Source of the DNA: Neoechinorhynchus agilis
Taxonomy: Eukaryota; Animalia; Acanthocephala
DNA: 64,000 bases
Assembly (NCBI GenBank): GCA_051530055.1
Contig: CM121342.1
Location: 1,956,797-2,020,796 of the forward strand
Direction: 5' to 3'
The notes below the pieces were generated by a model. It had not been told where the DNA came from. It saw only the letters and a list, made by a program, of their open reading frames with translations, and made no database searches. Made by a program: the position numbers and the translations under genes. Positions 1,122 to 25,099 of the stretch are shown here, in pieces; the first letter of the stretch is position 1, and each line of letters opens with the position of its first letter.

Positions 1122-1399
1122 AATTATTTATGAAAATTATTTTATCAACATATTAAGCTTATTTAACCAAATAAAATATTTAATCAAATTAATTTATGTT
1201 ACGATGTAAAATATTTTTTTGATTTAAAAATTTACGATCGCTTCGAACACAAAGAACTGATATGCTTTTATGACAAAATTTGAATCTACGCGGTCATCTG
1301 ATTATCCGTTGATTAATCAAATATTAACATTTTGTTTCTGTTTTCGTATTAACCCCAGGTCGAGATTTTCTGATGATATCATTTTTTATATTTAATATT

Positions 1400-2340: not shown

Positions 2341-2456
2341 ACGAGGAATATATTTTGTTTGGTGATGAGGAATTATAAATTAGAATCCTGAATAAAATAT
2401 AAATTTAGATAAAATGGCGGTAGAATAGTTTTATTCACTCCAAATGCTGCATGCAA

Positions 2457-2745
2457 TCAAAGCCTAATTCCATCCTCCACTTCGATACCGTCAATCACAT
2501 GTTTACGACGAGTGTATAAATTCTTTACGGTCGCAAAACACAATCCGGATGCAGTTTCATCTCTAACAAATAGACTTACCAAAAGTTCATTATCGTTCAT
2601 TGCTGAGTAACTGCATAAGAAGTGGGTGGAATAAGACCGTTTAGGAATTTTTTTGAAGAATGAGAGAGAACAGCCCCTTGGGGGACCCTCGTTGATTGCT
2701 GAGGTCTTCGAGGCGATGCTTACCATACGGGTTTTTGGCAATCAT
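2457..2745 (-). mobile_element. Second LINE RT remnant (domains 4-5), paralogous to 1415-1490
   Basis: Encodes QRGSPQGAVLS and, after a frameshift, MNDNELLVSLFVRDE (degenerate FADD). 2651-2720 is a diverged direct repeat of 1415-1486. Confidence 0.55.
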
Positions 2746-2790
2746 CTAGTTAAGTAATGATCAAACCCTTAGATCAACTTCCATCTAAAT

Positions 2791-3060
2791 GACCAGGTGT
2801 TCACGAAGACCAGGTGTTCATGAGGACAGGTGTTCACGAGGACCCAGAGGTACATGGTTCTTCTTTGATAAAATAAAAAATAAAACGTGTTATCAACGTG
2901 CTCAAAACGTATATTAGAGAAAGATAGCAGTTGCAATTGTTGATTTAAACAAAAAGTTATGAAATAACAAATACTTAAATTTGCTCGGTATTTATCTTTG
3001 TATCCCGCTCGTTCATCAATGATAAATATTTCCGGACACTTTCCTCGTTCCATTGTGCGT
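2791..3060 (-). mobile_element. Putative hAT transposon end with triplicated terminal motif
   Basis: Three tandem ~17-bp copies of GACCAGGTGTTCACGAA (2791-2840), then AGGTACATGGTTC...ATAAAACGTGTT, which matches 21293-21360 next to a clear hAT dimerisation-domain fragment. Confidence 0.45.
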
Positions 3061-3299
3061 CAAAACATACATTGATGATATTCCCTTTTCACAAAAGATT
3101 GTAGTCCGCCAGAGAAACCTATTCATCCGCTTCCTTGTTAACCAAATCGTGATGTATGATAAGACTTATAATATTAGTTGATAAACTTTGTGCCGTTGGC
3201 ACATTAAAGGTTGAAAAGCCCTAATTAGAATCATCATTCATAGTGATTGTCTTTTGCGTGACGGCTTCTTCTCAGGTATTCTTATAATATTGGTGACCA

Positions 3300-3810
3300 T
3301 AATCCCGGCCATAACATGGCGAGACACGCGGAGTTAAACAACATTATTAGCCGGACGCTCCACTCATTAAATGTCCTGACTCTATTAGAGCCGAACCACC
3401 TGTGTCGCTCAGATGGCAAACGTCCCGATGGGATGACCATATTCCCGTGGAAAGAGGGAAAATGCCTTATCTGGGACGCCACATGCGTCGATTCGTTAGC
3501 ACCCTCCAGCCGAAGTGATGCAATATCAGGACCGGGAGGAGCTGCGACGGCGGCCGAAAGGAGGAAGACAGCGAAATACGCTGAGCTGGAAAAGACTCAC
3601 CTATTCCTTCCTTTCGGTGTAGAGACAAATGGGGCGTTTGGAGTGTCGGCAAAGAAATTTTGCGCGGAGATAGGCCGACTACTCATAAAAGCCAGCGGAG
3701 ATCACAGACAAAGGAACTACCTCATCCAACGCTTGAGTGTGGCTATTCAACGGGGCAACACGGCAAGCGTGATAACAACGGCCCAATGGAGTGGCGCGGA
3801 ATGAGGGATA
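3300..3810 (+). mobile_element. CRE-clade element, 5'-truncated, intact RLE domain ORF (162 aa)
   Basis: RHAELNNII...EPNHLCRSDGKRPDG...WKEGKCLIWDATCVDSLAPS...PFGVETNG...IQRLSVAIQRGNTASV is the typical CRE/RLE PD-D endonuclease C-terminus. Confidence 0.9.
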
Positions 3811-3939
3811 TAATGAAAAATGTTTTTTTGGAAAAGAAAATTTCAACATAAATAAAAAATTAATATATTTGAAATATTTCGTGAGGTAACTCCGTCAATT
3901 CAGTCATCTAAAAAAGTTGTTAAATTTTGTGTTATATAG

Positions 3940-4960
3940 CTCAGGTGCACGGGATCGCTATTTCCGAAGTGCAGGGACCGTGTGTCGTTTTTGATTGATT
4001 TTTGACGCATCGCCATCCGATAATTTTATTTGCTCTCCTTCTACAAAATAAGGTCGCAGCCAAAATATGCACAATGTTGAAGTCTCTCGGTGATTGGAAA
4101 TGGCAGAAGAGTGCTCAATTCGGCTGCAAGTTTGCTTACTTCTTAATGCCCTGCATCGTTTGCCCGATACAGATTCTTCATTATCGAGTAGATCATTTGT
4201 CGCTTAAGTACATTTATAAAAAAACTTGTACACTTTTATGTTTTTATCAAAACAGTTTTTTGCGTTAAAGACAAGATGTACAATCTAAACCATAGCCGCG
4301 GAGTGTACATATCAAGCAAAAGATCAATTGCATTTGCCATTCTAAAATATTTGTGCAGGATCTACCGTACCTTAGACCCCGATTTCTAAGAGCATAAATC
4401 AAGATTCTATTACGCACGGAGATCAGTAATTTTCTTAAGATCATTGTTGATTGTTGTAGATTTGGTGAAATGTAAAATTTCGTGAGGAATCCTTTTTTCA
4501 TCATTCATCTAAAAAGGTTTTAGTTGTTTTCTATTAAATGGCTCTTGTCCACGGGATCGCCATTGCCAAAGCGCAAAAACGGTGTACTCCGTTCGAACCC
4601 CTGCGTTGTGTTGCGTTTCAAAGATTTTAACATAGTTTTGTTTCCTTCCATGGTGTTAGAAGTAGCGAGGTGTAATGCCTCAAGATCAGAGCGTCGTTTA
4701 AGGTTTTGCGTTCTCTGCGCGATGTTGCATTGCTCAAATCGGCACAGAATTGCTGACTGATGTTAGATGATCCTCTTATGATGCCGTGCATCGTTTGTCC
4801 TACCAGCATTTTATCACACTGAAAGCACTGTATTCTGTACACCCCTTGAGTCTTATTTGTGTCTCTTATTCTCCAAGTATTTGCGAGCGTGATCCTTTTA
4901 TTTTTGTACAACCTAACTCCCACCTTTGTCTTAAAAAATCGAGCGTATCATTTTAGTAGT
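3940..4960 (-). mobile_element. Two tandem diverged Penelope-like (PLE) fragments, RT thumb plus GIY-YIG
   Basis: 4627-4923 encodes QGVYRIQCFQCDKMLVGQT (GIY-YIG motif). The adjacent copy encodes ICIGQTMQG. The two share CACGGGATCGC ends at ~3948 and ~4550. Confidence 0.65.
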
Positions 4961-4983
4961 TTCATCGTTGATGAAGTTTGCGC

Positions 4984-5100
4984 TTTCGAAGCTAAACACA
5001 CTGCGGACGAAATTATGATGGGTGATCGGTACTTGCGTCTTTCGAAGCTAAACACACTGCGGACGAAATTATGATGGGTGATCGGTACTTGCGTCTTTCG
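4984..5100. repeat. 56-bp perfect tandem duplication
   Basis: TTTCGAAGCTAAACACACTGCGGACGAAATTATGATGGGTGATCGGTACTTGCGTC starts at 4984 and again at 5040. Confidence 0.9.
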
Positions 5101-6139
5101 ATTCATCAGTATATTATCCAGCGCGAATATCCACTTGCTATCAATTTTTCGAAGGTCCTTTTTCTCGCCTTATTCCATGCAAATTGAGTTGATGAGATCA
5201 TAAAAGCTCGTCCAAAATGGAAAGTATGAAAATGTTATCCATAGATTGTTTTTGGTCAGACGAAATCAAGAAAAGTGATTTAACTTGATTAATATTTCGT
5301 CATCTACGTGGGACTTCTTCAGATCTGCTTTATTAATAAGTCGACTATATGTCAAACATAGGAAGTGAATGCGGAAATTTTATACTTCATAGGTCGATGA
5401 CTAGACGTTCGGCTTCCGAAATAATCAAGTGAAAATTTTGCCAAGTGTTGAACGTTTAACCAAGACATCTAGAAACGAAATCTCGCCATCACCATTCTCG
5501 CTATAGACAGTTCACTGTGTGTGCATCTTGAATGTTCAGTACAGCATTTAAAGAGTCTTTGTTGTGGTTTAAATCGGCCACGAGAAAGTGGACTCCCCTA
5601 AGGTCAGAGCTAGTGACGATCCCATGGCTACCCCATTTGTTTGATCGTAAAAATAACCATTAAATTCAAAGGCAGTCATAATCGTGCACCATTGGTCGTT
5701 TTATTCAATGGGACATTGGCCAAGAAGGCGTTCACGTTGGCCGTAAACATTCTGTAGTGTACAATGTTTATGTTTCTAAACGCAATCGCAAACGTTAAAC
5801 CATCCTTAATGTGTGAAGCGGAGATTTGTAAAATTGATCTTAAAAATGCATTGATCTTTTTAGATGTGCGATGATTAACACACATATTGCAAGCTATAAA
5901 TAGACGGTATCGAGGGATGGGCTCGTGAATCGTCGGAAGGAGACAGAGAAGGCTCCCGCAGTTAATGATGATCTCGTCATATTGCTTATTGCTGACATTC
6001 TCTTGAGCGGACTCGTGATTGTCATCTCGTCTTTGTCGTTGAGAACTTTCTGGACACAAGTTATCCTGTCATAGGCCACTATGGAGTCCATGTTCAACTT
6101 GTCTAATGATATACTGAACTGCTGACTTTCCAACAAATA

Positions 6140-6575
6140 ATCCAGTTTCACGAACGTAGGTACTTACAAACATTGTCAATACCTTTTCATGGCATCTCGA
6201 TATTTGTAGAAAAACACCCGAAGAAATATATGTCATCCAGAACTCAATAGCGTATCTTTGTGTTTCTCAAGAATATTCATATTATGTTACATTTCAATTA
6301 TTTCAAGCTTTATTGCAACTTCTCCCAATAACTTCATATTTTTTGCTACGATGTAAATATCACACGTTAAATTATTCTCAACAAAAAGTTGCAATTCAGA
6401 CGGCGAATGTCTAACAAACGAGCAGAGAAATCCGATTTAAACTTTTCTGATGATATGCTGAAATGCCCACTTTTAACCAGATAATCAAGTTTCATAAACG
6501 TAGGTACATCCAAACATTGATAATATCTTTTAATAGCATTTCGATATTTGTGGAAATTCATCAAAAGAAATATAT
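6140..6575 (-). mobile_element. Two diverged hAT C-terminal dimerisation-domain fragments
   Basis: 6157-6270 is nearly identical to 21549-21662 (KVLTMFVSTY). A second diverged copy sits ~340 bp downstream at 6480-6575. Confidence 0.6.
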
Positions 6576-6599
6576 TTCAAACAAAACTACGGTTTTCCT

Positions 6600-6940
6600 T
6601 CATATCGATTCCGTGAAAGATCATCTTTCCGTTTCTACACTCTTGGATAATACCGCTACTGGGACCGCATGATTTCGTTAAGAGTATATCCATTATTAGC
6701 GAAAATTGCGTTCACTCCTTTTGAAGCCAATCGTTTCTCGGATAATGACGATATGCAAACCAGTGATGTTCTGTGCATCTCTGAGGATAATGGGAATCTC
6801 GATGTGATACCAACTGAAATCAGTGACCTGATTAACTTTGAAACATAAATGGAAAAATAGCCGATAATCCGATGGTTTGTCTTATGATATGGGTGATTTT
6901 GGTTTTTGACCGAATAAATGCCGGTTACCACGAGTAGCGA
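6600..6940 (-). mobile_element. PLE RT-thumb remnant
   Basis: ORF 6656-6931 encodes HPYHKT...LIRSLIS...AIFANNGY, matching the PLE HP..K...RSL...NGY pattern. Confidence 0.5.
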
Positions 6941-6964
6941 CGAAGACTTATTGAGTAAAATATT

Positions 6965-7160
6965 GATGTAACGGCTTATTCATGCGGCGGCTGCCTTGGT
7001 ATTTTGCCACAGCCATTTTCCAACAATATATGGATGATCTGCTTAATGAAATTCCTGGAGTCACAGTATATCTGGACAATGTCCTCATCACTGGAAAACA
7101 CAAGATGGAGATAATATATCGAGTTGGATTGCGATTAAATCGTGCCAAGTGCGTAGTACG
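6965..7160 (+). mobile_element. Ty3/Gypsy RT fragment
   Basis: RRLPWYFATAIFQQYMDDLLNEIPGVTVYLDNVLITG...GLRLNRAKC; the YLDD catalytic motif has decayed to YLDN. Confidence 0.8.
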
Positions 7161-7564
7161 GCTCTGTCTAACATTTAAAGGTCTCCTTTCAGAATTGAGC
7201 ATCCGTACTCAGCTTCTATTACTGTTGTCACTGTACAGAGCAAATTTCCATTCGGCCAAGTATTAATGGAATCGCCATGCGTCGAACATTATGGCTAACC
7301 CTTCTTATTCCCACTTGAGGATAATTCTTTTCTGGTCTTTTTAGGTGTCTGGATGCATATGCCACCTGAAACGGTTTCCCGTTGTGCGGTCTAAATTAGG
7401 ACCACCCGGGATATTTCTCACTCACATCGCACCACAGCATTGTTTCTATGCCCAGATTGAGGGTCTTAAAACTTGAGCGCACATCAATGAACTCCTAACT
7501 TCGTCAAAAGCCTCATCGTATTCTATGCTCCACTCTCATTTCTTACATTTGTTGATCAATTCAT

Positions 7565-8214
7565 TTAATACTTGACATTTGGATTGCAAGCCGGGAAGGA
7601 ATTTTTAGGAAATTTACGGTGCCGCGGCAGCGCTAAAATCGCATAAATTTTTGTATCACTCGGTCGCATATAATCGCAATGCAGGTTGTGGTCTAGGAAC
7701 TCAATCTTGTCCAGTAAGAAAACGCACTTGGCACGATTTAATCGCAATCGAACTCAATTCAATCTCCCCATCTTGTGTTTTTGCAGTGATGAGGACATCA
7801 TACAGATACACTGCAACCCCGAGAAAAATTATTTTATAAAGACATTCAATTTATTTAACGAATTTTTTATTCAAATTAGTTTATTTTGATATGACACGTG
7901 AATCGTCGATTGGCACACTTAATCCATTGTTCAAATCATCGGATAAGTATCGACAAATCGCTGGATATGTAAACCAAGATTTCCTTTACAATTGAACATA
8001 AATCCCTATTGTTTTTCACTCCCTTTCCAATATCGGCGATATATCTTTTTAAATTATCGTCCTCTTTAGATTGAACAACTTCGATAAAATACTCATCTGC
8101 TTGGATCTTTAATTTCTTTAGCTTACACATACATCGAGGTTCAACACAATTACGCATGTACGTTTCAAGTGTTTGTTCGCTTTCCAATCGATTTTGTTGA
8201 AGAATTTTCTCCAA
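7565..8214 (-). mobile_element. Inverted second copy of the same Gypsy RT, with a possible gag remnant at 7936-8214
   Basis: 7690-7830 is the reverse complement of 7050-7155 (GVAVYL.DVLITAKHK...LRLNRAKCVFLLDKIEFL). The gag call for 7936-8214 is weak and rests on position and composition. Confidence 0.6.
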
Positions 8215-8599
8215 GTTTAAAACAGACAGATCGTTAAATGAATACTTATAGCGCTGTTTTTAACATTAGAGTAGTTTCATAACTAAAGTTGTCAAAGAGA
8301 TTAGTCGATTTTTGAAATACGTGGAAGGTTAGATAGTTTTTACATTGTAACATTTTTTAGATTACTTAATGAGCTAAAATAGCTGAAAAAGAAAATTGAA
8401 TTCGATGCAAAAATATTACAGCACCTTTAGCATAAATGATCGAATGCTTGGAATTCATAACAATGTTATTTTTTTCAATTTGAGTATGAAAATTAAAAAG
8501 ACGTACGTGTTCCAAGCGATTTAAGAATTATATAAATTCAGATGGAAATTATTTTCCTTCGTACAGAAAGTTAAAAGCTTCCTCCAATCTGATACAGTA

Positions 8600-9500
8600 A
8601 GATTCCAGCCTTCATTATTTTCCAATCGCCCCAATTATGGCAGAAATCTACATGCGCCACTGGGAAGATGCCAATGTATGTAATTTCACATTTAAAATTA
8701 TGGCTACGATATGTTGATGATACATTTCTCCTCGTGAACAGCTCCATTGGCGAAGAGTAAATCTGTGACATTTTAAACCGTCCAGATTCTTCGATTCAGT
8801 GGAGTGTCGATGTGAATGAATGTCAATCATTTCCTTTCCTAGATGTCCTGGTTGGGCGAGCTAATGTTTTTAATACGAAGTTTTTTCGAAAACCTGGTAT
8901 CCCCAAGCAGCCTGTTCCATGGATATCTAATCTACCCAGCCAATAAAATTCAAAATTGGCAGAATGGTCGCACTATTTCGTAGGACCTACAATTACTAAT
9001 CAGAAATTGATTTTTTGAAAAAATTTTTAAAAAAAGAGGCTACCCGTATAAATATATCACACGTTGCATTCGAGGCATGAGCATTTGGAAAAAGACTCAA
9101 CCCCAAAAATTGGAGGACAAACGGTATATAAGCATTCCATTTGTGAACGACATTTGGAACGGAAAATTAAATAACCGTATCGTTAATGGATATGGTAACA
9201 AAAACATGAAGGCAGTTACTTATACGACAAAAAAACTCTCAGTGCCCTCATACGTTCTGCTCGTCTATACGACAGGACATTCCATCAATTTTGATACTGT
9301 CAAAATCTTGATGCGTAGTGACGATCGATATTCGCGTGTTATTGTTGAATTGATACACATTCACGATCGCAACACGATGGAAGGCAACCAAGCTGATTAC
9401 CAGTTGAAATTGCGGACTGGGGTTACCTAACCTCTCCTTGTTTTAGATATCCTGACGAAGACCCATGAAAGGGTCGAAAATTCGAATTCAATTGACAATT
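8600..9500 (+). mobile_element. Degenerate PLE: RT (YVDD), thumb, GIY-YIG tail and terminal hammerhead motif
   Basis: PIMAEIYM, KLWLRYVDDTFL, FPFLDVLV..KFFRKP, YISIPFV and GHSINFDTVKIL...ELIHIH. The GIY-YIG core itself is deleted. Confidence 0.85.
9452..9489 (+). ncRNA. Minimal hammerhead ribozyme core at a PLE end
   Basis: CUGACGA-A-GACCC(AUGAAA)GGGUC-GAAA-AUUCGAAU-UC: both conserved boxes, a 5-bp stem II, palindromic stem III and a UUC triplet. Stem I pairing is poor. Confidence 0.6.
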
Positions 9501-10017
9501 TTATTTAATTTTAATAAATTCACCAATCTTTAAGATATCATTTCTTAAATTTAATATTTTAACAGCCGTTTGTTGCAATATAAAATCATTTGGATTTTTA
9601 TAGTCAGTTTCATCTTTATAAGATTGCTATCAAGTCAATTGTGCGAGTGAGTGTAATATTTGCCTTGAATATTAATAATAATTTTTTATTATTGACAAAC
9701 TTGCATAATTTTTGCTTCTTGGTTGAAGACGTTAAATAAAGTGTTGAGAATATCCAGAAAGGTAGATTGAATTTTTACGGTGGAGTTTTTAAAGATTGCA
9801 TTCAAATAGACTACAATCTTTTAGTAACAAAAGATTTCCTAAGTGCGATTTTTCATTTTTTCGTAAGGAGAAAACATAGACTTGACATCGTGTCTTAGGG
9901 GAATTTTTAACAAAAGGTGTCTTTGGTGTTGGGTGTCTCGAGACAAAAAATGCCATCCCGCCCATTGTCGTTAGTACATATAGGACAAGTGCGCTAAAAG
10001 TTTGACAAATTTTTTGA

Positions 10018-13000
10018 ATGCGCACTTTGATTCGAGTCGTATTTGTACTCCTCTTCCCGCAAATTCTGTCTGGTAACAACGTCTTTTTTAATCTTTAAAT
10101 ATTATAATTAACCAAATTTAGAGCGCATTGATAGCTATGTAACCACGGATGGAATCGAATTCGAAGGAATTATTCCTAGTGCTAATAAATCTGCGAAAAT
10201 ATTTAATCGGACCATGGAAAACAGTTCCCTCAACAACGAGCCAATTAGCGAGCAAGAATTGATCCCAAGTGCGGAGGCGAACGAGAGCGGCCAATCACGA
10301 AATAATGAAGAATACCCAAAGAAAGGACATGAATTAATCGCTGGACAGGGATTGGGGGACGAAACATCATCTCAAGATGAAGGATTAGATGATAATAATG
10401 CAGATAAATCTGAATTACCCTTGACAAAACAGAACTCAATCAATGACTTATATTCAACTAAGAGTCTTTTATATTCCACAGCAGCGAAGCATGCATTAAC
10501 GAATAATACGGAATATTTAATGCCTGAATCTTTCGCCAGCGATTCGGTTATAAATTTTAGAGGTATTGAAAGCGATACTTACTCAGATGTAGTGGATACA
10601 ATTGAAGAAGAGCAAATGTATTCTACTATGCTTGACGAAGTTGAAATTTCGAACGATTTATATCAGCAGACATCATCTGAAAAAACAAATGATTTTGTTA
10701 GTCAATACGATGGCGTCTCTAACAATGAGGTAGGAAATTTTTATTCAAACAATATAGAGCCTACAACTACATCGAATTTTCATGGAGTCAGTGAAGTTGT
10801 TACTGAAGAAAGTGATAGCGCTATAATAGAAAATATTTTTCATGGCACCGAAATCGATCAAGCCCCTCAAATAATGGAAAATTTGACTTCAATTCACGTC
10901 GAAAGTGGAAACGAAAATTTGAGTGAAAACGTCGAGGAAAATCTTTCAGCGGAAAACGGATTCCATGGAACCACATTTCAAAATCGCATAGATGATTCCA
11001 TTGAAGAAAATTTTCAAGGCTCCACAAAACCTGCACAAGAAACGGATAAAATTCAGGATCAACTTTCGTCTCATGCAGATAAGATTTCGACAGATCACTT
11101 GCTCGCAATTCAGGAGAGCTATTCGACTGAAGGGGCAACTTCTAACAATGAATACACAGAAAATGAGCAATCTATAATGATCAGAAATTATTCATCAATA
11201 AAAGTACCGGAGAGTGAGCAATCCGCCACAAATTTGAATACAGAGACATACTGGAGAACCAGGGAAGGCGAAATGGGAATGGCAATGCTGACTTGGAATG
11301 ACTTCGATCGCATCAATTTAACGAGTAGTGAAGAACCGTTAGATATGGGAACTATATCTGTTTCTGGCGGTGATCTATGGGCAAGAGCGAAGGAAACGAA
11401 CGATAGAAGCACGTTTCTAGTAAACGAGACAGTTCAACGTACAGAAGGATTTGAAGATTTACTTGGAGATGAAGATGAATCTAAAGATTCGATATCATTT
11501 TCTATCAACGATGATTTTGGGACAGAGGAATTGACAGCAACTCGACATACTGAAGTCTTCAGTGGCCCTGAGACTTCTGAACAAATTTTACTTAATATGC
11601 CTACACTCGGTGAAGGGGTGGGTGGATATTCAAGTAATAGAAATGAATCTCTTAAGACAAATAAGTCCACGGCAATCAAGGAGGAGATAATTTTCGGTCA
11701 TTTGGGAGAGATTAACGATATTGCAGACTCTGGAGTTGTAGAAAAAAGGCGAGACTTGTCCTCTACAAGCGTAAATTCAATACAAAATGACACTTTAGCA
11801 AATACATCGAACAATGTTTCAGAAGACAACTCATTTGTACCCGAGACATCAAGTTGGCCTAAAGCGGAGGAAATTTCAAGTACCTTGTTGAGTGGTACCC
11901 ATTTCAACAAAAACGAATCTGGCACACAATCTCAAGATAAAGGTTTCTTTGAGGCAAAATTTCACAGGGAAATTAGAGAAATTACCCCTGAAGAAGTTTA
12001 CGATGCTATTTCGAGAACTGATGAAGCATCGCGGATCAAAATGGCGGAACATTTCATCGGCACTCAAAAAGAAGAAAAAAATGTATTGAATAGTTCTAAA
12101 GATAATTTGACAACGTTAAACAACATCACCGCAGTAAATTCAGAATTTACACCCGAGCAGAAGTCTACAAATCAAACTGGGCTGAGTACGTATCAACTTT
12201 CGGAACCAAACGCAACCAATAATACTGTGGTAGGAGGCGGAATATTAAATAATAGCATCGAATCCGTGGAATCGACGACTAAGTCTGGTAAGGGGAACTT
12301 GAATGAGACATTTATTACAATGGGCGCAAGTATTGGTGAAACTACGTTGAGTGCCAAATTGCTTCAACTTTCGTCGGAGTCAATGATTGCGTTCAAAATA
12401 CAAAAACAAGTTAATCGCAGTTCAGCTACTAACCAGAACTTATCGGAGATTTTCCTTCAACCCACTGACAATGAGTCGGTTCAACTGCCGGTTGAGCATC
12501 CGGTTTTCGAACATGCTACAAGTTTAATTTTAAAGTCCACTTCGACAAATCTAACTACTGTAGCAGAGCAAGACGACAAACAAAGATTTGCATTAATTAG
12601 TAGAAAAAGGAAATCAGCAGGTGCAATGAGCAACATTTCAACACACGATAATGGGCTACCTGTTTCAACCTTAAGTGATTCAAATCTTGAACGTAACGCA
12701 GATTCCCATAAAAATGAATTTACATCGCCGTTGAAGGTAGAAGAGAAAGATCAAAGTGGGGAGAAATTTTCAGAAAACAATGGCACAAATATTCCGCAAA
12801 TTTCGAATGAGGATTTATTACATGCTCGAGGAATATACGTTGAAGGATCGGAAACCCTTATTTATGACGGAAAATCCACGACTTCTTTGCAAGATCATGG
12901 AAATTTTAGTTTTGAACAAAAGGATTCCGGCATGAAACATAGCTCGGATTCACACAAAAATGAATTTACACCGCAAATGGGTATAGATGAGGAAAGTCAA

Positions 13001-15571
13001 AATGAGGATATATTTTTAGAAGGCAATGGTACAAAGACTCAAAAAATTTCGAATAAGGATTTATTAAAAGCTACAGATATGCACATTGAAGGATCAGAAC
13101 CCTTTAAAATTGACAGAAACCCTACGACTTCTTTTCAAGATCGCGAAAATTTAAGTTTTGAAGCAAAGGATTCCGTTATAAAAAATTCCATGGAGTCACA
13201 CGGAAGTGAAATTACGTCGCAATTGAATGTAGAAAAGGAATATCAAAGTGTGCAGATATATTCAGAAAACTATGGCACAGATATCTTAGAAATTTCAAAT
13301 GATGATTTATTAAATGCTCGCGGAATACACGTTGAACGATCGGAAACCCCTATAATTGGCGGAAAAACCACGAGTTCTTTGCACGATCACAGAAATTTTA
13401 GTGTCGAAGCAAAGGATTCCGGTATAAAACATAGTATGGATTCACACAAAACTGAATTTACATCGCCGTTGAAGGTAGAAGAGGAAGATCAAAGTGGGGA
13501 GAAATTTCCAGAAAACAATGGAACAAATATTCCGCCAATTTCGAATGAGGATTTATTACATGCTCGAGGAATATACGTTGAAGGATCGGAAACCCTTATT
13601 TATGGCGGAAAATCCACGACTTCTTTGCAAGATCATGGAAATTTTAGTTTTGAACAAAAGGATTCCGGCATGAAACATAGCTCGGATTCACACAAAAATG
13701 AATTTACACCGCAAATGGGTATAGATGAGGAAAGTCAAAATGAGGATATATTTTTAGAAGGCAATGGTACAAAGACTCAAAAAATTTCGAATAAGGATTT
13801 ATTAAAAGCTACAGATATGCACATTGAAGGATCAGAACCCTTTAAAATTGACAGAAACCCTACGACTTCCTTTCAAGATCGCGAAAATTTAAGTTTTGAA
13901 GCAAAGGATTCCGTTATAAAAAATTCCACGGAGTCACACGGAAGTGAAATTACGTCGCAATTGAATGTAGAAAAGGAATATCAAAGTGTGGAGATATATT
14001 CAGAAAACTATGGCACAGATACATTAGAAATTTCAAATGATGATTTATTAAATGCTCGCGGAATACACGTTGAACGATCGGAAACCCCTATAATTGGCGG
14101 AAAAACCACGAGTTCTTTGCACGATCACAGAAATTTTAGTGTCGAAGCAAAGGATTCCGGTATAAAACATAGTATGGATTCACACAAAACTGAATTTACA
14201 TCGCCGTTGAAGGTAGAAGAGGAAGATCAAAGTGGGGAGAAATTTTCAGAAAACAATGGCACAAATATTCCGCAAATTTCGAATGAGGATTTATTACATG
14301 CTCGAGGAATATACGTTGAAGGATCGGAAACCCTTATTTATGACGGAAAATCCACGACTTCTTTGCAAGATCATGGAAATTTTAGTTTTGAACAAAAGGA
14401 TTCCGGCATGAAACATAGCTCGGATTCACACAAAAATGAATTTACACCGCAAATGGGTATAGATGAGGAAAGTCAAAATGAGGATATATTTTTAGAAGGC
14501 AATGGTACAAAGACTCAAAAAATTTCGAATAAGGATTTATTAAAAGCTACAGATATGCACATTGAAGGATCAGAACCCTTTAAAATTGACAGAAACCCTA
14601 CGACTTCTTTTCAAGATCGCGAAAATTTAAGTTTTGAAGCAAAGGATTCCGTTATAAAAAATTCCACGGAGTCACACGGAAGTGAAATTACGTCGCAATT
14701 GAATGTAGAAAAGGAATATCAAAGTGTGGAGATATATTCAGAAAACTATGGCACAGATATATTAGAAATTTCAAATGATGATTTATTAAATGCTCGCGGA
14801 ATACACGTTGAACGATCGGAAACCCCTATAATTGGCGGAAAAACCACGAGTTCTTTGCACGATCACAGAAATTTTAGTGTCGAAGCAAAGGATTCCGGTA
14901 TAAAATATAGTACGGATTCACACAAAACTGAATTTACATCACAAATTAGTAGGAACGTGCATATGAATATATTTTTAGAAGGGAATGGCACAAATACTCA
15001 AAAAATTTCAAATGAGGATTTATTAAAAGCTACAGAAAATAACATTGAAGGATCGGAACCCCTTAAAATTGATGGAAAAACTACGACTTCTTTGCAAGCT
15101 CACAACGGAAATTTTAATATCGAAGCAAAGGATTCTGTTATAAAAAATTTCACCGAGTCACACGGAAGTGAAATTACGTCGCAATCGAAGATAGAAGAGG
15201 AAGCTACAAATGAATATATATTTTTAGAAGGCAATGACGTAAATACTCAAACAGTTTTGATTGAGCAATCATTAAGTGATGGAGAAATACGAGTTGAAGG
15301 ATCGGAAACCCCTATAACTGAAGGAGAAACCGCGACTTCTTTACAAGATCACACAGATTCTAGTTTTGAAGCAAAGGATTCCGGTATGCAACAAAGTGAT
15401 GAACCACCAAAACGCAGATCTGTAAATGACAATTTATATGGAGAAGGAACAAACAAAAATGCAAAAGGCGGTACAATTAATATATTGGGAATCGTCCTTG
15501 GATTCATATCTGCTTTAATCGTGATCGTAATTGTCGTTGCTGCTCCAATTTATTTGCTTTATTATAGATAA
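10018..15571 (+). CDS. Giant acidic S/T/E/N-rich type I membrane (mucin-like surface) protein, ~1834 aa; exons 10018-10072 and 10122-15571
   Basis: Exon 1 (MRTLIRVVFVLLFPQILS) is signal-peptide-like and joins the 5.4-kb ORF in frame through a 49-nt GT-AG intron (10073-10121). There is a hydrophobic C-terminal TM (ILGIVLGFISALIVIVIVVAAPIYLLYY), many N-x-S/T sites and internal 82-aa repeats. Confidence 0.85.
12700..15400 (+). repeat. Coding tandem repeat: ~11 x 246-bp (82-aa) units, the first nine arranged as 3 x 738-bp higher-order repeats
   Basis: Units start at ~12703, 12949, 13195, 13441 and so on. Copies 738 bp apart are nearly identical, whereas adjacent 246-bp units are clearly diverged. 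Confidence 0.95.
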
Positions 15572-16625
15572 AGGCCTAATAAATTTAAGTTCATTCCAAT
15601 TTAATTTTCCACGCAAGACCTTGAACATTTTAGTTTGCAAGAGTTAATCTCAAACCACCGGCGTAGATAATGCATGCTTTGGTAATAGTTCGTCCGTTAC
15701 CATTTCTTCTGAAATGCCATTCATCGCAACGACGACATAATTCGCTTTCCTATATTTTGACGCCGTACTATTTTTACTGATTGAATCATATAAATCATTT
15801 AACTAAATCCGTCAAGGAGGCGTTTTTGGTTAAAAACTAAAAAAATTGATCGCTTTTCGTCAACCAGTTCGACCAATAAGATTCCTAAATGATTTTAATC
15901 ACAGAGCGTCAGATATTCGTTCGTGAACGAAAATAGTTGCACTATTGAATATTTTGAAAGTTTGTATTTTCGCGCTTGTAAAAATACAATGACTAAGTGC
16001 TTGTGTTGGCTTTCCTAAAAAAAGGTTCTGAAAATTTAAACGAAGATCGGTCAAGTTATAATTTCAAACACAATACGATTTAAAATTAAAAAATGTTGAT
16101 AGCAGCCTGAACCAGTGACGTTGATGTTCATCTTAATAATGATGATAATGCCCCATGTATTTCTGAAAATTTTAACATTAAAAAATCGTTTTGTTTTGCC
16201 ACGAGATCTTTTATAAAATACCAAGTATTCAAGATACCAAGGCGTTACTATAATAACCGAAGGGTCGCGGTCCAAACGAAAATATCTGTTTCGATCAACA
16301 CTGCCGTTCAGTTTCGAATGAATACATCAATACCAATACAGCCACGTAACCCACAAAAACATACAAACACGCGATAACTGATAAATCGATCACCCCACCT
16401 GCCACAGTGATTATCTCTGTCTAACTACGAATAAATGAATTCGTTGACGTGAAAAGCGTTTTAATTCGAACACAATTTATCTCCCTCTTATAAATTTAAA
16501 TGTTTTTAAGATAATCGATAAATACTCACTTTGAAATATTCCATTTGCTTCATATCACATCAGAATCAAAGTACAACCAAAAATTTGTGTGAAAAGTATA
16601 TTTCCAGTCATTTTAGAATATCGAA

Positions 16626-18671
16626 ATGCGAGAAAATCCAAACAGTTCAAAAAATCCATCTCGAACCGCTTACGCTGCCCAGGATGCGGTTCAGTCAGCA
16701 AATCAATATCCTGCTCACATCGAAAGCGCAACGCTGCAGCGACCCTCACTGCCTAGAATGCACCACAATCCACAAGTTCGACAAGATTATGAGCAAAGAC
16801 AACAAGCACCAACTTTTCAAAACCTACCATGGCAAATGCTCTCACAGTTTCGGCATCCAACAACTCAAATGAACACTGAACAAATTCCCCCCGCTGTAGA
16901 ATACAACCAGCAACAAATGCAGCATTTAAGAGCTCAGCATTTTCCTGCCGGTACGTCACGCTTCGTTAACAACCAACCGGTGAGTTTTCACCATTCCGGA
17001 GCAATTTCTCAAGCCGGAAATCAGTTCGGTGCCGAAATTCAAGCCCAGGGCCATCACTTTCCGAGGCGACCAGTTTCAGCCCAAAATCGAATGGAAATAC
17101 AACCGCCAATTCATCATGCGATCTACCAACAATGTCCTCGAACGTCACCGTCAAATCTCGGATCGCAACAGCCAACGGTTCCTTATCAACAAATAATGAA
17201 CCAATATCACCCGAACTCTATGCATGGAAGCGTCATAATCTCTAGTCCACTGCAACCATTTCAGCAAGCACCTTGCCATCCGCCTTTGCAAATCTTAAAA
17301 GCAGACTTAGATATTCCTACTGGACAATTGCCATCCGTAAGAGCGAATTTGATGTCTGTGTCGTGTCAACCGCATCAAGCAATGTTTACTAAAAATCAGC
17401 TGCCAGGTGGTTACGTTGAAAGTCAAGTTGCAAACATGCATTTTATAGCGGAACCCGGAATCGCAGTCTCAGTCGACAATCAGCATCAACAGGCAGTAGA
17501 ACAGAATCCGATAATAAACACACAGTCTTACGATCCACGCTTGCTTAAAATCAACCAAGAACCTCGCCGAGATATCTCTGAACATCAATCGCTACAAACC
17601 TCTAGCAAAAGGCAGCCACATAGCACAGTGCACATTCCGAATAATCCACTGGGGCCCAAAGATGCCATCGAAGCTCAAGCACCAGCCAATCAAATGACTC
17701 CACAGATTTGTAATGCCTTGGAAAGCGAGTTCCAAATTCATCCATCGAAATTCGAAGAAAAGTGCAACGCAGATAGGAAGCCGAAAGCGAACAAGGAGTC
17801 CCATAATGGAAAATCTTCCAAAACGAAGGTTCTGAATGCTGCATTAAACTCTACTGAGATGCTTGGGATAGATGTAGATTTTCTTGGAGGAGAGCACGGG
17901 CCTACGTCGCTCTCTCAATATTTGGGAATCTCAACATCTTCTAAAGACTCGAGCTCATTTTTCTCTTCAACGGAATCACAAAGCAGTGAAATGTCCAAAT
18001 TTGGGACATTGGGCAAACCGAAGTCGGATAAAGAATTATGTCAATTAAAGAAATCAAAAAACAAATCCAAAGCTAAACGACCAAGAAAATTAGATTCTGA
18101 CTCTTCGAACTCCTTCGAACGCACAACGTCGCGGGGTCGAAAAATGAAAACTATTACAAGGAAAACCAAGGAATTTAAGAGAAGTAGTGACCATAGGAGA
18201 TCTAGAAAAGCCCAATCGGATTCTTCAGATATGTCCAATGATAGTTCATCCTACAGCAAAACATTACAAGGATCGAAGTTCGCGCTTTTCACGCATGAGG
18301 AACATTCAATACTTGAGAATCACAGATCAATTTTTAATGAAGAATTTCATTCACAGGTTGATTTTTTCAGCCAAGAGTTGGTTAGTAAGTTAAAATCTAA
18401 AGTGGATCGAGCGGAACAGCCGGAGATAAAAATCCTTGGTGTAAATTGCACCATTGAAGAATTCGGTGGAGATCAGTTTAAGAAAATTATTGGAGACGAG
18501 TACGATAAAAAAATTTTCGAATCGTGTGAATCTCTACACGACGTTATGAGATACAAAAAGTGCCTTGAACTTGGTCATTCTACGCAGTACGTCGATTCAA
18601 TCGAAGAAGCGGAGTCACTTATTGACCAGATGAATGCTCCTTTGACTGTAAAAGAGAAGCAGAAAAGATAG
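16626..18671 (+). CDS. 681-aa intronless orphan protein: Q/P-rich N-terminus, S/K-rich basic middle, acidic C-terminal domain
   Basis: 2-kb uninterrupted ORF in AT-rich DNA with low-complexity composition and KKSKNKSKAKRPRK-type basic clusters. No family recognised. Confidence 0.75.
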   Translation: MRENPNSSKNPSRTAYAAQDAVQSANQYPAHIESATLQRPSLPRMHHNPQVRQDYEQRQQAPTFQNLPWQMLSQFRHPTTQMNTEQIPPAVEYNQQQMQHLRAQHFPAGTSRFVNNQPVSFHHSGAISQAGNQFGAEIQAQGHHFPRRPVSAQNRMEIQPPIHHAIYQQCPRTSPSNLGSQQPTVPYQQIMNQYHPNSMHGSVIISSPLQPFQQAPCHPPLQILKADLDIPTGQLPSVRANLMSVSCQPHQAMFTKNQLPGGYVESQVANMHFIAEPGIAVSVDNQHQQAVEQNPIINTQSYDPRLLKINQEPRRDISEHQSLQTSSKRQPHSTVHIPNNPLGPKDAIEAQAPANQMTPQICNALESEFQIHPSKFEEKCNADRKPKANKESHNGKSSKTKVLNAALNSTEMLGIDVDFLGGEHGPTSLSQYLGISTSSKDSSSFFSSTESQSSEMSKFGTLGKPKSDKELCQLKKSKNKSKAKRPRKLDSDSSNSFERTTSRGRKMKTITRKTKEFKRSSDHRRSRKAQSDSSDMSNDSSSYSKTLQGSKFALFTHEEHSILENHRSIFNEEFHSQVDFFSQELVSKLKSKVDRAEQPEIKILGVNCTIEEFGGDQFKKIIGDEYDKKIFESCESLHDVMRYKKCLELGHSTQYVDSIEEAESLIDQMNAPLTVKEKQKR

Positions 18672-19739
18672 GTCGAGAAACAGAGAGCTAATACCGCTGT
18701 TTGTTTGAACATTAAACAGGAAATATTTTTAGCTGACAAATAAAAAATGGAAAATTTCGTTTCTTAATGTATTGGCTTCTTTATCGGCGAATTTAAACTG
18801 CCAACAATCACTCTTAAATTAAAAACTGGTTAATATCATAAATTGAGAGGTGCGATATTTCTTTATTGGTAAAAAACAAAGCAAGAAAAATTTTGTTTTA
18901 TTTTTCAGGTCGAGAGAAAGCTTCAGGTCCTAAATTCGTCAAGTATTAATGTTTGCTTAACACTTGCTATCTGCTTCGTAGCCATAAGCATTCGAATTTT
19001 ATAAGTTGGTGGAAATTATATTTACTATAAAATTAATACTCGGACGTTAAACGAACAACGTTTTTGACTTCAACGTAGTGATTTGGTTCCGCTAAAATTA
19101 AATAAAGCGGTCAATATTCGACTGTCATCTCTCAGTCCAGTCAACGTCCTCTTTCTCGCCAACGTCCCTTCTATCTCAGTCAACGTTCTCTAATCAATGA
19201 ACGGTGAACTAGAATCGGACAAGTATTTCACTCTTATTGATGTTGCACTAAAGAAATGCTTTGAGCGAGTTACTGAAACTCTAAAGGACTCGTTAATTGA
19301 AGTGATGAGCACAGTTAAGGGTATATTAGCGGAGGCTATTCAGTGCGAAATGAAATCTCTCAAAAGTGAACAGTTGATCGAAGTGAAAAAGTGCAAAAGA
19401 AAAAAAACTAACAGTTCAAAGAGGCAGACAAAGGTTTTATAGGGAATTCTAAGAAACTAGCTAAAGATTTACAGAAATCGGCTAGCGAACCGGTCACGAA
19501 AGAGAATACGGTTTTGGAAATAAATGCAAAAGTTCACAACAGATGGAATTCGATGCAGGAAGATGACATCGACGCCAAAATTTGCTTCAATTTCTCTTGC
19601 CTTTTTATTAACCTCTAAAACGCACGAAAAAACAGAATAATATATTTGAAATCTCTGTGTTGTTTTCAGCTCTCATGATTAATTTGTTTAGTATCTTTGC
19701 TGGGCAGGCATCCCACTGATCTGGTTCAGGGAAGTGATT

Positions 19740-20200
19740 GAATTAGCCGGCGTCATCGGGGAGCATCAACGGATTTTCTGGTGTTGCCGGTTGAAGCGGT
19801 CGCGGGATTTGACCAGATACCCCACAACGTGATTTGACGGACCATGAATGCGCAAAACCCCCAATTTCGTTATTGAAAAAGAGTCTAAACAAACGGGGCA
19901 TATACCTTTGGAGAGGCCTGATGTCCCTGTAGCGTTGGGCGTTTCCTCGGTATTTGATTGGTCCGAATACGTAGTTGGGCTTCCGTGGCTTGTTGCGTCA
20001 AATTGTATTATTGCAGCCTCAACGGGTCGTGACATCGCATAAGGATCGTGTGTTTGCCGTGAAAAATGAAATTGCTTGTCCCAAAGTAGAGCTTTGATGA
20101 ACAGAATTTAGGCCTGGTGTCCCGGTAGCGTTGGGTGTTTCCTCGGTATTTGAGTGGTCCGAATACGTAGTTGGGCTGTCGTACCAAGAATATTTCTATT
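19740..20200 (-). mobile_element. 5' part of a CRE-type element (N-terminal zinc finger) with an internal 67-bp direct repeat
   Basis: GICPVCLDSFSITKLGVLRIHGPSNHVVG resembles the N-terminal CxxC...HGP finger of animal CRE ORFs. 19915-19981 repeats at 20111-20177. Confidence 0.55.
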
Positions 20201-20761
20201 GAGCTCCTACGCTTTTGTCTTTGCGTCGATGGATATTAATTTTAGAAAATTCGACGAAGGAACTGAAGAAATGCTTTAGACGAAATATAAGCCACAAGCA
20301 TTTGGTTTTCTTGCCTTGAACAACATATTTCTCCATAGACTTTGTCATTCTTACCTTTATATTGTGAATAAGAATTGCATATATCGCTGCCTAAAAATAT
20401 ATTATCTTTGTCGTGTGTAATAAATGTATAACATTAAACAAAAAACTACTTCCGCTATCACCATTCTCCGAGTTGGGTCAACTAATTTACTTCCTAACTC
20501 GTCTTGAAGCTCACTTCGACAAAGTGTTCACCAATATCGAAGCCTACTCAACCGCCTGTAAACCCCCATCAAACGAAATCATTCGCATAAAAGATTTATG
20601 CACTGAATGCTTCGGTTTGATTCCCTCCCTTTTCCGCAGCCTCATACCCTACCCCAGTCTTCCAAATGACATTCTACGAGTCAATTCCCTCAGAATTGTG
20701 GGTCACCAATTTCAATTAAATCTGAAATGGGACTCGAACATTTCACTCTCCTTCAAACGAA

Positions 20762-21275
20762 ATACCTTTAAAAAATTACGTCGTCAAACGAATCCGACAT
20801 TTAGGAGTCCAATCGCCCGCCCTCTTCAAATTTTACTATAGCTTTATTTTACCTTAATTCACCTACGGTTATATAGTCTTTTGCAAACTAACCAATTCAT
20901 AAATCGCCTTGAAACATTTCAAAGAAGAACCCCTAAAATTTGACCAGTTGATTTCCCCCTCTCGCCAAATTCCTTTATAAGATTTTCAACAAACAATCAA
21001 AACGCCTCCCAACCCTACCACTACGATTTTTACCATATTTTATCCCCCTTTTCACACGAGCACAATACTCGCAATCCCAATTCCCGTTTTTCCTTTACCG
21101 CGTATCTGCTTTTACCTCTGCTTCTTTTTCATACTGGCAATCTTCTCGGATATCACAACCCGAAATGAACCTGAGGAAGGAACCAACCTGACAAACGTTT
21201 CTACAAACAATAAGCACCAACTTTCCCCCACTCGACCGGACTTGTAATCCCGTAAAAAATCAACAGGCGCATTCA
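20762..21275 (+). repeat. ~510-bp dispersed repeat, inverted partner of 32585-33067
   Basis: Near-identical reverse-complement match. The distal copy lacks ~30 bp (21128-21158). Contains a decayed hammerhead-like string CTGAGGAAGG...AAACGTTTC. Confidence 0.9.
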
Positions 21276-21292
21276 TTTATCCTATCAGAACT

Positions 21293-21680
21293 CAAGTGTT
21301 CACGAATACCCAAAGGTACATGGTTCTTTTTCTTAGTTCATTTATAAAACGTGTTGTTATTATTTGATTAAACATTCCGGCACGTTTTAATGAGAGATTA
21401 CACTTTGAATTGTATCTGCAATTTTTTAAATTACGGTTTGTACTTTGTAACTGATGCCCTCATTATATTTTTTGAAAGGTTCGTCAGTCAATGAATTTCG
21501 CGTTTTCGATTTGATGTTAGTCATTGCAGAAAATGAAGTTTCAAAAACGTAGGTACTTACAAACATTGTCAATACCTTTTCATGGCATCTCGATATTTGT
21601 CGAAATTCACCCGAAGAAATATATGTCATCCAGAACTCAATAACGTACCTTTGTGTTTCTCAGTGCAGTATTGGAAGGTG
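21293..21680 (-). mobile_element. hAT transposon 3' remnant (dimerisation domain plus end)
   Basis: FWMTYISSGEFRQISRCHEKVLTMFVSTYVFETSFSAMTNIKSKTRNSLTDE matches the hAT C-terminal F.STY.CE..FS.M..IKSK.R..LTDE pattern. Confidence 0.85.
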
Positions 21681-22101
21681 CGTAAAAATTGAATGATACA
21701 GCTGACTGATAAGTCCAGCTTTTTTCAAAAAACACTGATTTCCTTCAATAAAGTTCTATTAATTGATCATTCCCTTGCAATTTCAAATTTCATTTATTCA
21801 GGCGGTCCGTGATTTCAGTAAGAAATGCGAGTAAAACGATAAACATTGGTGTTTCTAGGTGAACAACAACTTCTTGGATTTCCCCGTGAGAAGAATTTTG
21901 TTTGTGAGAGCACGTTACCAAATACAGAAAGAAGAAGAAACACTATTTGGTAGCGAAAAATGATTTTTCTAGAAAAACAACCTCTGTTGGCTCGCGGGAC
22001 CCGCCGTAGTGGTACTTTTCTGTGTTCTGTTTTCCGTACGTGAAATGCGCAGGGGAGGACGAGGAGCCGATGGAAGCCAAATTTCCTCCATCTCCTGCTC
22101 G

Positions 22102-22174
22102 TGGAGCTGCCGGGTGTCGATCCCGGTGCCTCTCGCATGCAAAGCGAGCGCTCTACCAGCTGAGCTACAGCCCC
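22102..22174 (-). tRNA. trnA-UGC: tRNA-Ala (anticodon UGC)
   Basis: GGGGCTG TA GCTC AGCTGGTA GAGC G CTCGC TT-TGC-AT GCGAG AGGCA CCGGG ATCGACA CCCGG CAGCTCC A: full 73-nt cloverleaf with a eukaryotic Ala-type A54 T-loop. Confidence 0.95.
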
Positions 22175-22689
22175 GTGGGGACAGCCTAATCCGGCTAAAT
22201 TCCAACATCGTCTAACCGGACCAATAAACGCGACAGAGAATAAGAAACAGGAGTCATAAGTCGGCCTTGTTGCGCCGAAGTTTGTATAGCAAGCATTTTG
22301 TCTCGTTCCTGCTCTTCATCATCGTGACCCTGAAACACCAAGGTTTCGCGTGCGTCTTGTTTCCTCTGCCAAAATGCAACGATGGGATTTTACGTTAGCT
22401 TTTAAAATTAGATACTATTATTACATCAAGTGAAGACCACAAAACCAAGTCAGCGTTGTTTGGTTTAAATTACCAGATTATTAAAAACTGCAATTTTGCA
22501 ATTTATAAAACAAATGAACTGCGATAGGAATGGACACATTGTGAAGGACAAACAACATCAAAAAACGGAAGCGTGAAGGCAAGAATCCAGATTTCGATAT
22601 TTTCCTTAATAAATGGTTTGACATTGTTACTCGACGAGGTTTGCGAGTAAGCGGACCAATGAATGCAAAGCAGAAGAGGTAGCTAAAAT

Positions 22690-22880
22690 GTTGGATTTGC
22701 TAGAAGTAGTTATCGATCACGCACCTGAAGCATTTCGATATTTCGTTAATGCTTAATGCGAACTCAACACCCTTGTTGTTCAACAACCACGTTTGGTGGT
22801 CAGAAAGAGGAGTTCAACAAGGGTACCACTTGGGCCCAATGGCTTTCGCACTAGCAATCAATCGCGTCGCTTTGCGCCGG
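22690..22880 (+). mobile_element. CRE-type RT fragment
   Basis: EAFRYFVNA...STPLLFNNHVWWSERGVQQGYHLGPMAFALAIN (GVQQGDPLGP motif); similar to 46165-46220. Confidence 0.75.
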
Positions 22881-23205
22881 TATTTTACATGCTACGATTT
22901 TGTTCAAGCGCAATCCGTCAACAGAACATTTGATGCAACATTTGATAAGTTCCTAAAAAAAATTTCGCACGCTGTAAATTAATTCGTCAATAAGTTCTAG
23001 TGCAAAAGAAATGTCAAAATCAAACCATCCTGCCTTGCAAAATAAGACTTCTTTGTGTAATTGGACCGGCCGGTTATTAGGACCAAAACGATCGCGTACC
23101 GCAGAAGCCCGATTAATCCCGGAATGAGGTTCTGTAGTTATCCTAACCATTGTGTTCAATGAAATCGACTCAAAAGATGGGAAATATACGATGCTCTCTC
23201 TACCT

Positions 23206-24610: not shown

Positions 24611-25099
24611 TGAATTGCATAAAGAAAATTTGAACACTCCTTTTCGTCAAACTCCTCTCAGTTGAATTGAAGTAGGGTTAAAGAATTTCTAGGCTGGCAT
24701 AATTAATCGATTTCCGATGTATGCTATTATTAGTGATAAGTTTAAGTTGTGATTAAAACACGCTGGTCACCTTCAATGATTTTTCTAGTGTCTAACAATT
24801 CCTAAGAATTTAAATCGAACGATAATAAATTTCATTAACTAATATCAACCATCTTGAGCATTATTTGTCGTACCTGCGTTCAGATTTCGACCTTAATATT
24901 CTTAAAATTCATTTGCGATAAAAAAATCACAACGAATATAATATTAAATTGGAATAATTGTGATCATAATCCTGAATAAAGCATAGCCTCGCCTCATCAG
25001 TGATTGCTTGTAATTTGTAGAAAACTAAACAATAACTGACAAGACTCCCTCGCAAGATATTTCAATAAAAAAAATTTTAACAATTTTTTTAAGCAAGCA

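Follow-up and report, generated by a model that had tools for sequence, protein, structure and literature searches.

The stretch of 64,000 nucleotides (nt) analysed here, hereafter called the window, belongs to contig CM121342.1 (assembly GCA_051530055.1, positions 1,956,797 to 2,020,796 of the forward strand) of Neoechinorhynchus agilis, an acanthocephalan parasite of mullets. At positions 12701..15397, counted from its first letter, it carries 11 in-frame monomers of about 82 amino acids (aa), nine of which are ordered as a threefold repetition of the A-B-C unit and are followed by two older monomers and then by a transmembrane (TM) helix. The reading that we favour, and hold to be somewhat better than an even bet, is that this array is translated within a type I membrane protein, whose disordered and glycosylated ectodomain changes its length by unequal crossing-over. 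The feature is real but ordinary, being a lineage-restricted repeat protein with a small and young higher-order repeat (HOR).

Tandem Repeats Finder registered here a single array at 12701..15387 with the period of 246 nt and 10.9 copies. If the open reading frame (ORF) is cut every 82 residues from position 12701, nine monomers appear in the order A B C A B C A B C, and they are followed by monomers of 80 and 81 aa. When all six frames of the window were searched with a hidden Markov model built from the five monomer types, the only hits were 11 copies at 12701..15397, and nothing in the N-terminal 880 aa scored above 0 bits. The look-alike N-terminal segment SSHADKISTDHLLAIQESYSTEG, considered as a degenerate extra monomer, was rejected by its profile score below 0 bits. 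Three higher-order units, delineated by the repeat finder, identity and the profile, lie on the plus strand at 12701..13438 (A1, B1, C1; 3 × 246 nt), 13439..14176 (A2, B2, C2) and 14177..14914 (A3, B3, C3). Each unit of 738 nt has its own private substitutions, and pairwise they differ at 8–13 positions (13 between units 1 and 2, 9 between units 1 and 3, 8 between units 2 and 3), which gives 98.2–98.9% identity with zero indels. Monomers A, B and C compared with each other are identical by only 72–81% in DNA and by 44–62% in protein. Thus, the unit copies are far closer than monomers inside the unit, and the length of the unit is an integer multiple of the older period with all 11 monomers in register, as it should be in a true HOR. 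The two older monomers were delimited by profile and alignment as D (14915..15154, plus strand, 80 aa), which is B-like and has a 9-nt deletion and a 3-nt insertion, and E (15155..15397, plus strand, 81 aa), which is the most diverged. In all these respects, namely the coordinates, the 82-aa monomer, the (ABC)x3 order and the presence of two older monomers, a preceding sequence-only reading of this DNA was correct.

Across the 11 monomers 14 amino-acid columns are invariant, including S2, H3, E6 and T8, L40, E48, S50 and E51 as well as the E, K, D and S residues, and 14 more are nearly invariant. The sequence-only reading ascribed both conserved motifs and N-glycosylation sites to each monomer. 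The motifs are indeed present, but the N-X-S/T sequons are not universal. One of them, NGT at monomer position 27, is present in A, B and D and absent from C and E, while the other, N-[FL]-S at position 68, is present in A, B and C and absent from D and E, leaving E without any sequon. The array contains 2.4% of Pro, 8.0% of Thr and 12.7% of Ser (Ser+Thr 20.7%), while Glu and Asp together make up 19%. The dominance of Pro, Thr and Ser characteristic of mucin PTS domains is therefore not observed, in agreement with the previous opinion that the repeat is not a plain mucin.

None of this is visible in the protein deposited in GenBank. The locus of the annotated gene ACOME3_005041 (822 aa) is base-for-base identical to positions 214..25425 of the window, and in the deposited model an “intron” at 12675..15417 (plus strand), which begins 26 nt before the array and ends 20 nt after it, removes the whole array. 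This removal shifts the frame, the product ends two codons later in another frame and the membrane anchor is lost. Taken at face value, the model makes the array intronic and gives a product of 822 aa without membrane anchor. It is true that the gene was deposited in just this form, its intron running from GT at 12675 to AG at 15417, and that BRAKER2, which modelled the array as an intron, drew on RNA-seq hints. Nevertheless we consider this structure quite unlikely. The supposed intron remains open in the frame of the exon for 2.7 kb: in the region 12701..15571 frame 1 has the terminal stop only, while the other five frames contain 34–86 stops. In the A-rich codons of the array 5–6% of possible single-base changes would yield a stop, and none of at least 140 substitutions between the five monomer types is a nonsense change versus 6.4–7.7 expected (P = 4e-4 to 1.4e-3). 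All indels registered among the monomer types (9, 3 and 3 nt) are multiples of three. The TM helix downstream of the array is in the same frame, and in comparison with the paralogous gene ACOME3_004865, described below, its block of 34 codons has a ratio of nonsynonymous to synonymous divergence (dN/dS) of 0.19. The GenBank model of this paralogue reads through its short repeat region into the helix, whereas that of ACOME3_005041 stops two codons past the acceptor, out of frame with it, and the acceptor itself, ACCACCAAAACGCAG, has no pyrimidine tract. Thus, the open frame, the missing nonsense changes, the indels in multiples of three, the conserved helix lying in frame and the read-through model of the paralogue strongly argue that the array is coding. 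Repeats in the N. agilis genome were masked by RepeatMasker before BRAKER2 prediction (PMC12690905), and the supposed intron closely hugs the tandem-repeat block at both ends, so one can assume that the predictor spanned the masked array with a false intron. This would be a concrete case of a coding repeat becoming an intron in a gene model because tandem repeats had been masked beforehand.

The corrected gene probably consists of a signal-peptide mini-exon, an intron of 49 nt and one exon of 5.45 kb, encoding a type I membrane protein of 1834 aa rather than an 822-aa fragment. The long ORF occupies positions 10214..15571 of the plus strand and comprises 1785 aa if counted from the first ATG. 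It is this internal ATG at 10214 that was taken as the start of ACOME3_005041, and the deposited model therefore misses exon 1. This exon, as read from the sequence, takes 55 nt at 10018..10072 (plus strand) and provides the start codon and a signal-peptide-like N-terminus, MRTLIRVVFVLLFPQILS, in which a basic residue is followed by a hydrophobic stretch of 15 residues. Intron 1 (10073..10121, plus strand, GTAAC...TTTAG), assigned from its sequence and from identity in the paralogue, runs from the splice GT at 10073 to AG at 10121, and its removal would connect exon 1 with the long ORF without loss of frame. Both the exon and the intron recur at the paralogue locus L001 (9805..9908) with one substitution, and the GenBank models of both genes begin at an internal ATG, missing this conserved mini-exon, so that the proposed correction affects two public models. 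Both the signal peptide and the splice of exon 1 are deduced from the nucleotide sequence.

The ectodomain as a whole is about 1760 aa long, acidic and Cys-free and has 49 sequons. Its non-repetitive part (10122..12700, plus strand) is also acidic, rich in Ser, Thr, Asn and Glu, contains no Cys, has 30 of the N-X-S/T sequons and matched no Pfam family at threshold. Behind the array there is a juxtamembrane linker, DEPPKRRSVNDNLYGEGTNKNAKGGT (15398..15475, plus strand, read from the sequence), with a tribasic KRR, which one might speculatively take for a processing site. The TM helix, INILGIVLGFISALIVIVIVVAAPIYLLYY, followed by one Arg and the stop codon, occupies 15476..15571 (plus strand) and was recognized by the Kyte-Doolittle scale, residues 1800–1834 being the sole place in the whole protein where 19-residue windows exceed 1.6. 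A cytoplasmic tail is essentially lacking. The combination of the upstream putative signal-peptide exon with the C-terminal helix, typical for a single-pass protein of type I, places the array in the ectodomain, as was supposed previously. Just upstream of the gene, at about 8700..9470, there is a retroelement remnant with a reverse-transcriptase-like motif RYVDDTFLL, read by eye.

The sequence-only reading proposed a profile search for paralogues, and an exhaustive search of proteins with the monomer alignment did recover one, ACOME3_004865 (KAL7669918.1), a hypothetical protein of 780 aa encoded in the same contig CM121342.1 of GCA_051530055.1 about 0.82 Mb away; the search with this paralogue returned in turn ACOME3_005041. 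The two genes share the putative signal-peptide exon, the intron, the TM helix and the C-terminal LLYYR, and their N-terminal parts are 96% identical in DNA (about 4% difference, synonymous divergence (dS) 0.034, dN/dS 1.2). The paralogue has only about 1.5 E-like monomers versus 11 in the window gene, and divergence within the pair is greatest in the repeats (64% DNA identity over aligned codons). Three more in-frame deletions in the paralogue, of approximately 130, 15 and 41 aa, are located elsewhere in the ectodomain. Judging from this disproportion in the monomer number and from the in-frame indels of the ectodomain, the length of the array is labile on the evolutionary scale. The ORF next to the window gene (16626..18671, plus strand, 681 aa, Gln/Ser-rich, annotated in GenBank) belongs to no Pfam family, and its partial copy, 91–93% identical, is inverted beside the paralogue (L001 15796..16777), which implies that the duplication behind the paralogue was larger and has since been rearranged.

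The history of the array can be traced from the same divergences. Monomer types differ by dS of 0.17–0.46, while the units formed by later triplication are diverged by only 1.1–1.8%, and the two-stage evolution proposed earlier is thereby supported. Unequal crossing-over, named in the same reading, also finds its trace. Over their first 26 nt A2 and A3 coincide fully with D, and A1 departs from them at 3 sites, which is the pattern expected at the joint after an in-register exchange of A with D. The first 31 nt of E are in turn identical to those of C, suggesting patchy conversion between monomers. Unequal crossing-over is thus the likely mechanism. An ancestral array of five monomers, A-B-C-D-E, would have diverged almost neutrally at the amino-acid level, then A-B-C would have been duplicated when the beginnings of A and D recombined unequally but in register, and the second exchange of the same kind would have given three copies. 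Since dS is 0.17–0.46 for monomers and 0.034 for paralogues, with 1.1–1.8% for units, the succession suggested under similar rates is an old array of monomers, duplication of the gene and only then triplication of A-B-C in the window copy. The same process presumably lengthens and shortens the array between gene copies and probably between individuals, making length polymorphism among living worms plausible.

Contigs were built by hybrid MaSuRCA assembly from Illumina reads together with Oxford Nanopore Technologies (ONT) R9.4 reads obtained from a pool of about 50 worms. In principle, alleles might have been placed in tandem by such an assembly, so that the triplication or the exact number of copies may be an artefact, the true allele having one or two A-B-C units. 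We regard this as improbable. The array is just 2.7 kb long, while the retained ONT reads are at least 5 kb, and single reads can therefore span it. Private substitutions found in each unit without any indels, as well as the A/D recombinant joint, which is a coherent biological signature, also speak for a genuine expansion of the array.

The sequence-only reading supposed further that the monomer may be an undescribed structured repeat, and suggested modelling of its fold. AlphaFold2 applied to a single monomer with an alignment of 11 rows gave a mean predicted local distance difference test score (pLDDT) of 55.5 and a predicted template modelling score (pTM) of 0.21, while for the whole A-B-C unit they were 32.4 and 0.12, that is, no confident model was obtained. 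The only recurrent predicted element is a 7-residue helix at NEDLLHA (pLDDT 70–78), present in every monomer. In the Pfam scan no family reached the gathering threshold; a match of the monomer to a known Pfam repeat, named by the sequence-only reading as an outcome that would refute it, was thus not registered. The best score, 21.8 bits against the cut-off of 23, was that of BAMBI with no single stretch passing, and apart from it there was nothing better than E = 0.98. The profile search of all PDB sequences with the monomer gave no match at E ≤ 10. The array has a grand average of hydropathy of −0.98 and an isoelectric point of 4.7 and contains neither Cys nor Trp, the composition being typical of disorder.

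Of all these observations, the most informative concern the substitutions in the array. The minimum numbers of substitutions between monomer types are 48, 49 and 43 for the first, second and third codon positions, respectively, so there is no excess of changes in the third ones. Pairwise Nei-Gojobori dN/dS among monomer types varies from 0.6 to 2.5 and nominally exceeds 1 in one pair only, B-E (P = 0.01, uncorrected for ten tests). In 11 of the 14 invariant amino-acid columns the codons are identical, and synonymous variation is observed in 3 only, while the number of fully invariant codons (11) fits that expected under independent invariance of sites (9.0, permutation P = 0.24). Thus, the “motifs” of the monomer are not distinguishable from DNA yet to mutate.

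With these data one can weigh the assumption that an extracellular domain of a new type, able to fold on its own, is formed by the 82-aa monomer, with SH..E.T, ISN.DLL, EGSE and EAKDS as its structural or ligand-binding core. It could be based on the 14 invariant and 14 nearly invariant columns, on the monomer length kept at 80–82 aa, on the short NEDLLHA helix recurring in each copy and on alternation of hydrophobic positions around IYVEGSETLIY. But the models are not confident, the invariant columns are nearly all represented by identical codons in a number fitting chance, neither Pfam nor PDB offers a relative, and half monomers are tolerated in the paralogue. A folded repeat should combine a confident fold with purifying selection on its core, and neither was registered; given the shallow alignments, this is lack of support rather than disproof. 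We consider such a domain unlikely, and the idea of a structured repeat finds no support, given the absence of a confident fold, dN/dS close to 1 and invariant codons at the chance level.

Relatives outside the species were sought in several ways. Queried with the whole ORF, a word-indexed search of proteins gave no match and missed even the paralogue, which is about 90% identical over hundreds of residues and which it did recover when the query was the paralogue itself; the neighbouring ORF coding for five KH domains gave no match at E ≤ 1e-10 in a search of this kind. Such null results are uninformative for repetitive queries and were not used alone to judge orphan status. Look-up of the long-ORF protein and of the KH ORF returned no record, and a scan of metagenome contigs for relatives yielded 269 pattern matches, none of which was confirmed. 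The exhaustive profile search listed, beyond the paralogue, seven bacterial proteins. Two of them, scanned against family libraries, contain HYDIN/VesB-like Ig domains (P0001 and P0003), and P0001 has also choice-of-anchor D (NF012200) and a sorting domain of the type IX secretion system (T9SS). It might be thought, therefore, that the monomer descends in truncated form from a remote common stock with the bacterial choice-of-anchor D or HYDIN-VesB-like Ig domain. Among the T9SS repeat proteins of bacteria its profile obtains E-values as low as 4e-12 for the protein as a whole, and hhalign aligned monomer positions 44–76 with positions 2–34 of the bacterial unit with the probability of 79% and identity of 42%. 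What is shared with NF012200 and PF22544 is a motif of about 30 residues, [IV]x[IV]xG[SN]xxxIxDGxxTxSLxDHxxF, and the match is confined to this length at the monomer segment IYVEGSETLIYDGKSTTSLQDHGNFS. However, a single bacterial repeat reaches 14.5 bits at most, and the low E-values came from summation of near-identical repeats. Only 33 of about 108 domain positions align, and the remainder of this domain has no counterpart in the 82-aa monomer, while a genuine member should match most of the model of 100–108 residues. The array itself has no NF012200 match at E ≤ 1 and no match to PF22544 or any other Ig-like Pfam family, and the similarity was picked out of 1.8 billion proteins. This kinship seems to us very unlikely, and the resemblance is judged to be a chance or convergent motif. 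Provisionally, the family may be considered as restricted to N. agilis.

In sum, the reading frame is protected, missense changes are nearly free, and length shifts by whole or partial monomers. According to the reading favoured here, the ectodomain including the 82-aa repeats would be an intrinsically disordered, glycosylated spacer or “brush” at the cell surface. Selection would then act on the open reading frame, composition and length and not on a particular fold or sequence, as a protein in this position would depend on its length, its charge and the amount of glycan that it bears, while the exact sequence would be of no importance. Acanthocephalans are gutless and take up nutrients across the body surface (PMC12690905), which makes the tegument a natural guess for location of this protein. 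A literature search on the acanthocephalan glycocalyx gave nothing directly usable, and both the spacer function and the surface or tegument location are suggested here as presumable ones.

Several circumstances weigh against this combined reading. Expression of the gene, splicing of exon 1 and the surface location are all predictions made from DNA, while RNA-seq hints were at the disposal of the program that modelled the array as an intron. The AlphaFold2 alignments comprised only 2–5 distinct sequence types, with which a fold of orphan type might go unnoticed. In the assembly from pooled worms the number of copies may be inexact. Finally, dN/dS close to 1 is equally expected of a functionless gene, and the nonsense test draws on some 140 substitutions under a simple model of mutation.

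A further possibility is that the gene arose by recent duplication and has no function, so that it merely drifts and its open frame is a leftover. The values of dN/dS, about 1 between monomer types and 1.2 between the N-terminal parts of paralogues, agree with drift, as does the lack of relatives found beyond N. agilis. However, chance falls far short of explaining an open frame of 1834 codons in DNA with 37% of G+C, the deficit of nonsense changes is significant, every indel between monomers and between paralogues is in frame, and the TM segment is under purifying selection. We find functionless drift hardly probable. Another assumption is that the 82-aa unit is a new host-facing module of a tegument surface protein under diversifying selection, whose number and sequence differ from worm to worm and thereby tune the contact with the gut of the fish or with its immune system. 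Values of dN/dS equal to 2–2.9 are observed in some monomer pairs and in two segments of the paralogues, and these comparisons with dN/dS > 1 may leave some room for diversifying selection at the host interface, but the data are too few to claim it. This assumption looks unlikely at present; if true, helminths would have an equivalent of the antigens with variable repeats known from parasitic protozoa. Very little molecular data exist on the acanthocephalan body surface, and a lineage-restricted, fast-evolving and sequon-rich pair of membrane proteins may reasonably be proposed as acting where parasite and host meet, and might serve as a marker polymorphic in length.

Other features of the window were registered along with the array. 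An inverted duplication has its arms at approximately 20762..28001 and 32556..40857, 91–99% identical in patches. Each arm bears an exon of a T-box gene (27310..27891 on the minus and 35963..36544 on the plus strand) and a gene with multiple KH domains (23200..23940 on the minus and 38881..40878 on the plus strand). A satellite with the period of 180 nt occupies 60201..63997 in at least 21 copies, about 95% identical, and runs past the window end. Two short tandem duplications were found at 4978..5101 (56 nt × 2.2) and at 56976..57224 (132 nt × 1.9), the latter overlapping the end of the MCM10-like ORF 57116..58285 on the minus strand. This ORF, containing the MCM10 OB-fold exon, and the exon with a C9orf72-like domain (53319..54293, minus strand) are housekeeping neighbours. 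There are also two tRNA genes, tRNA-Ala(TGC) at 22101..22174 (minus strand) and tRNA-Cys(GCA) at 45600..45671 (plus strand).

Among the closest known systems are mucin-type and mucin-like membrane glycoproteins, which have variable-number tandem repeats altered by unequal recombination; mucin variable repeats, together with titin and nebulin super-repeats, extend the set of coding repeats beyond the NBPF genes considered below. The comparison is with these glycoproteins in general. The N. agilis protein shares with them a predicted signal peptide, the long repetitive ectodomain, the single TM helix, many glycosylation sites, the repeat number changing by unequal recombination and the weak constraint on sequence with frame and composition kept. 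It differs from them in that the array is not a Pro/Thr/Ser domain, is strongly acidic and bears N-linked sequons, while the protein has no SEA, VWD or Cys-rich domain, no Cys at all and virtually no cytoplasmic tail.

As to the two-level organization itself, coding HORs are well documented, one example being NBPF 3mer HORs, or Olduvai (DUF1220) human lineage-specific (HLS) triplets, in human NBPF genes (PMC9584774, PMC10475015). The Olduvai monomer takes about 1.6 kb of genomic DNA with introns of its own and includes a domain recognized by Pfam, whereas the monomer of N. agilis is an uninterrupted exonic segment of 246 nt with no recognized domain and no sign of fold. Only three unit copies are present in N. 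agilis, and neither the organism nor the protein family is related. Nevertheless, in both cases three diverged monomers constitute a unit that is tandemly amplified within the coding region, similarity between copies of the unit greatly exceeds that between its monomers, and unequal exchange is the accepted mechanism. Thus, in its origin the array of N. agilis follows the textbook scheme of unequal crossing-over in a weakly constrained coding repeat.

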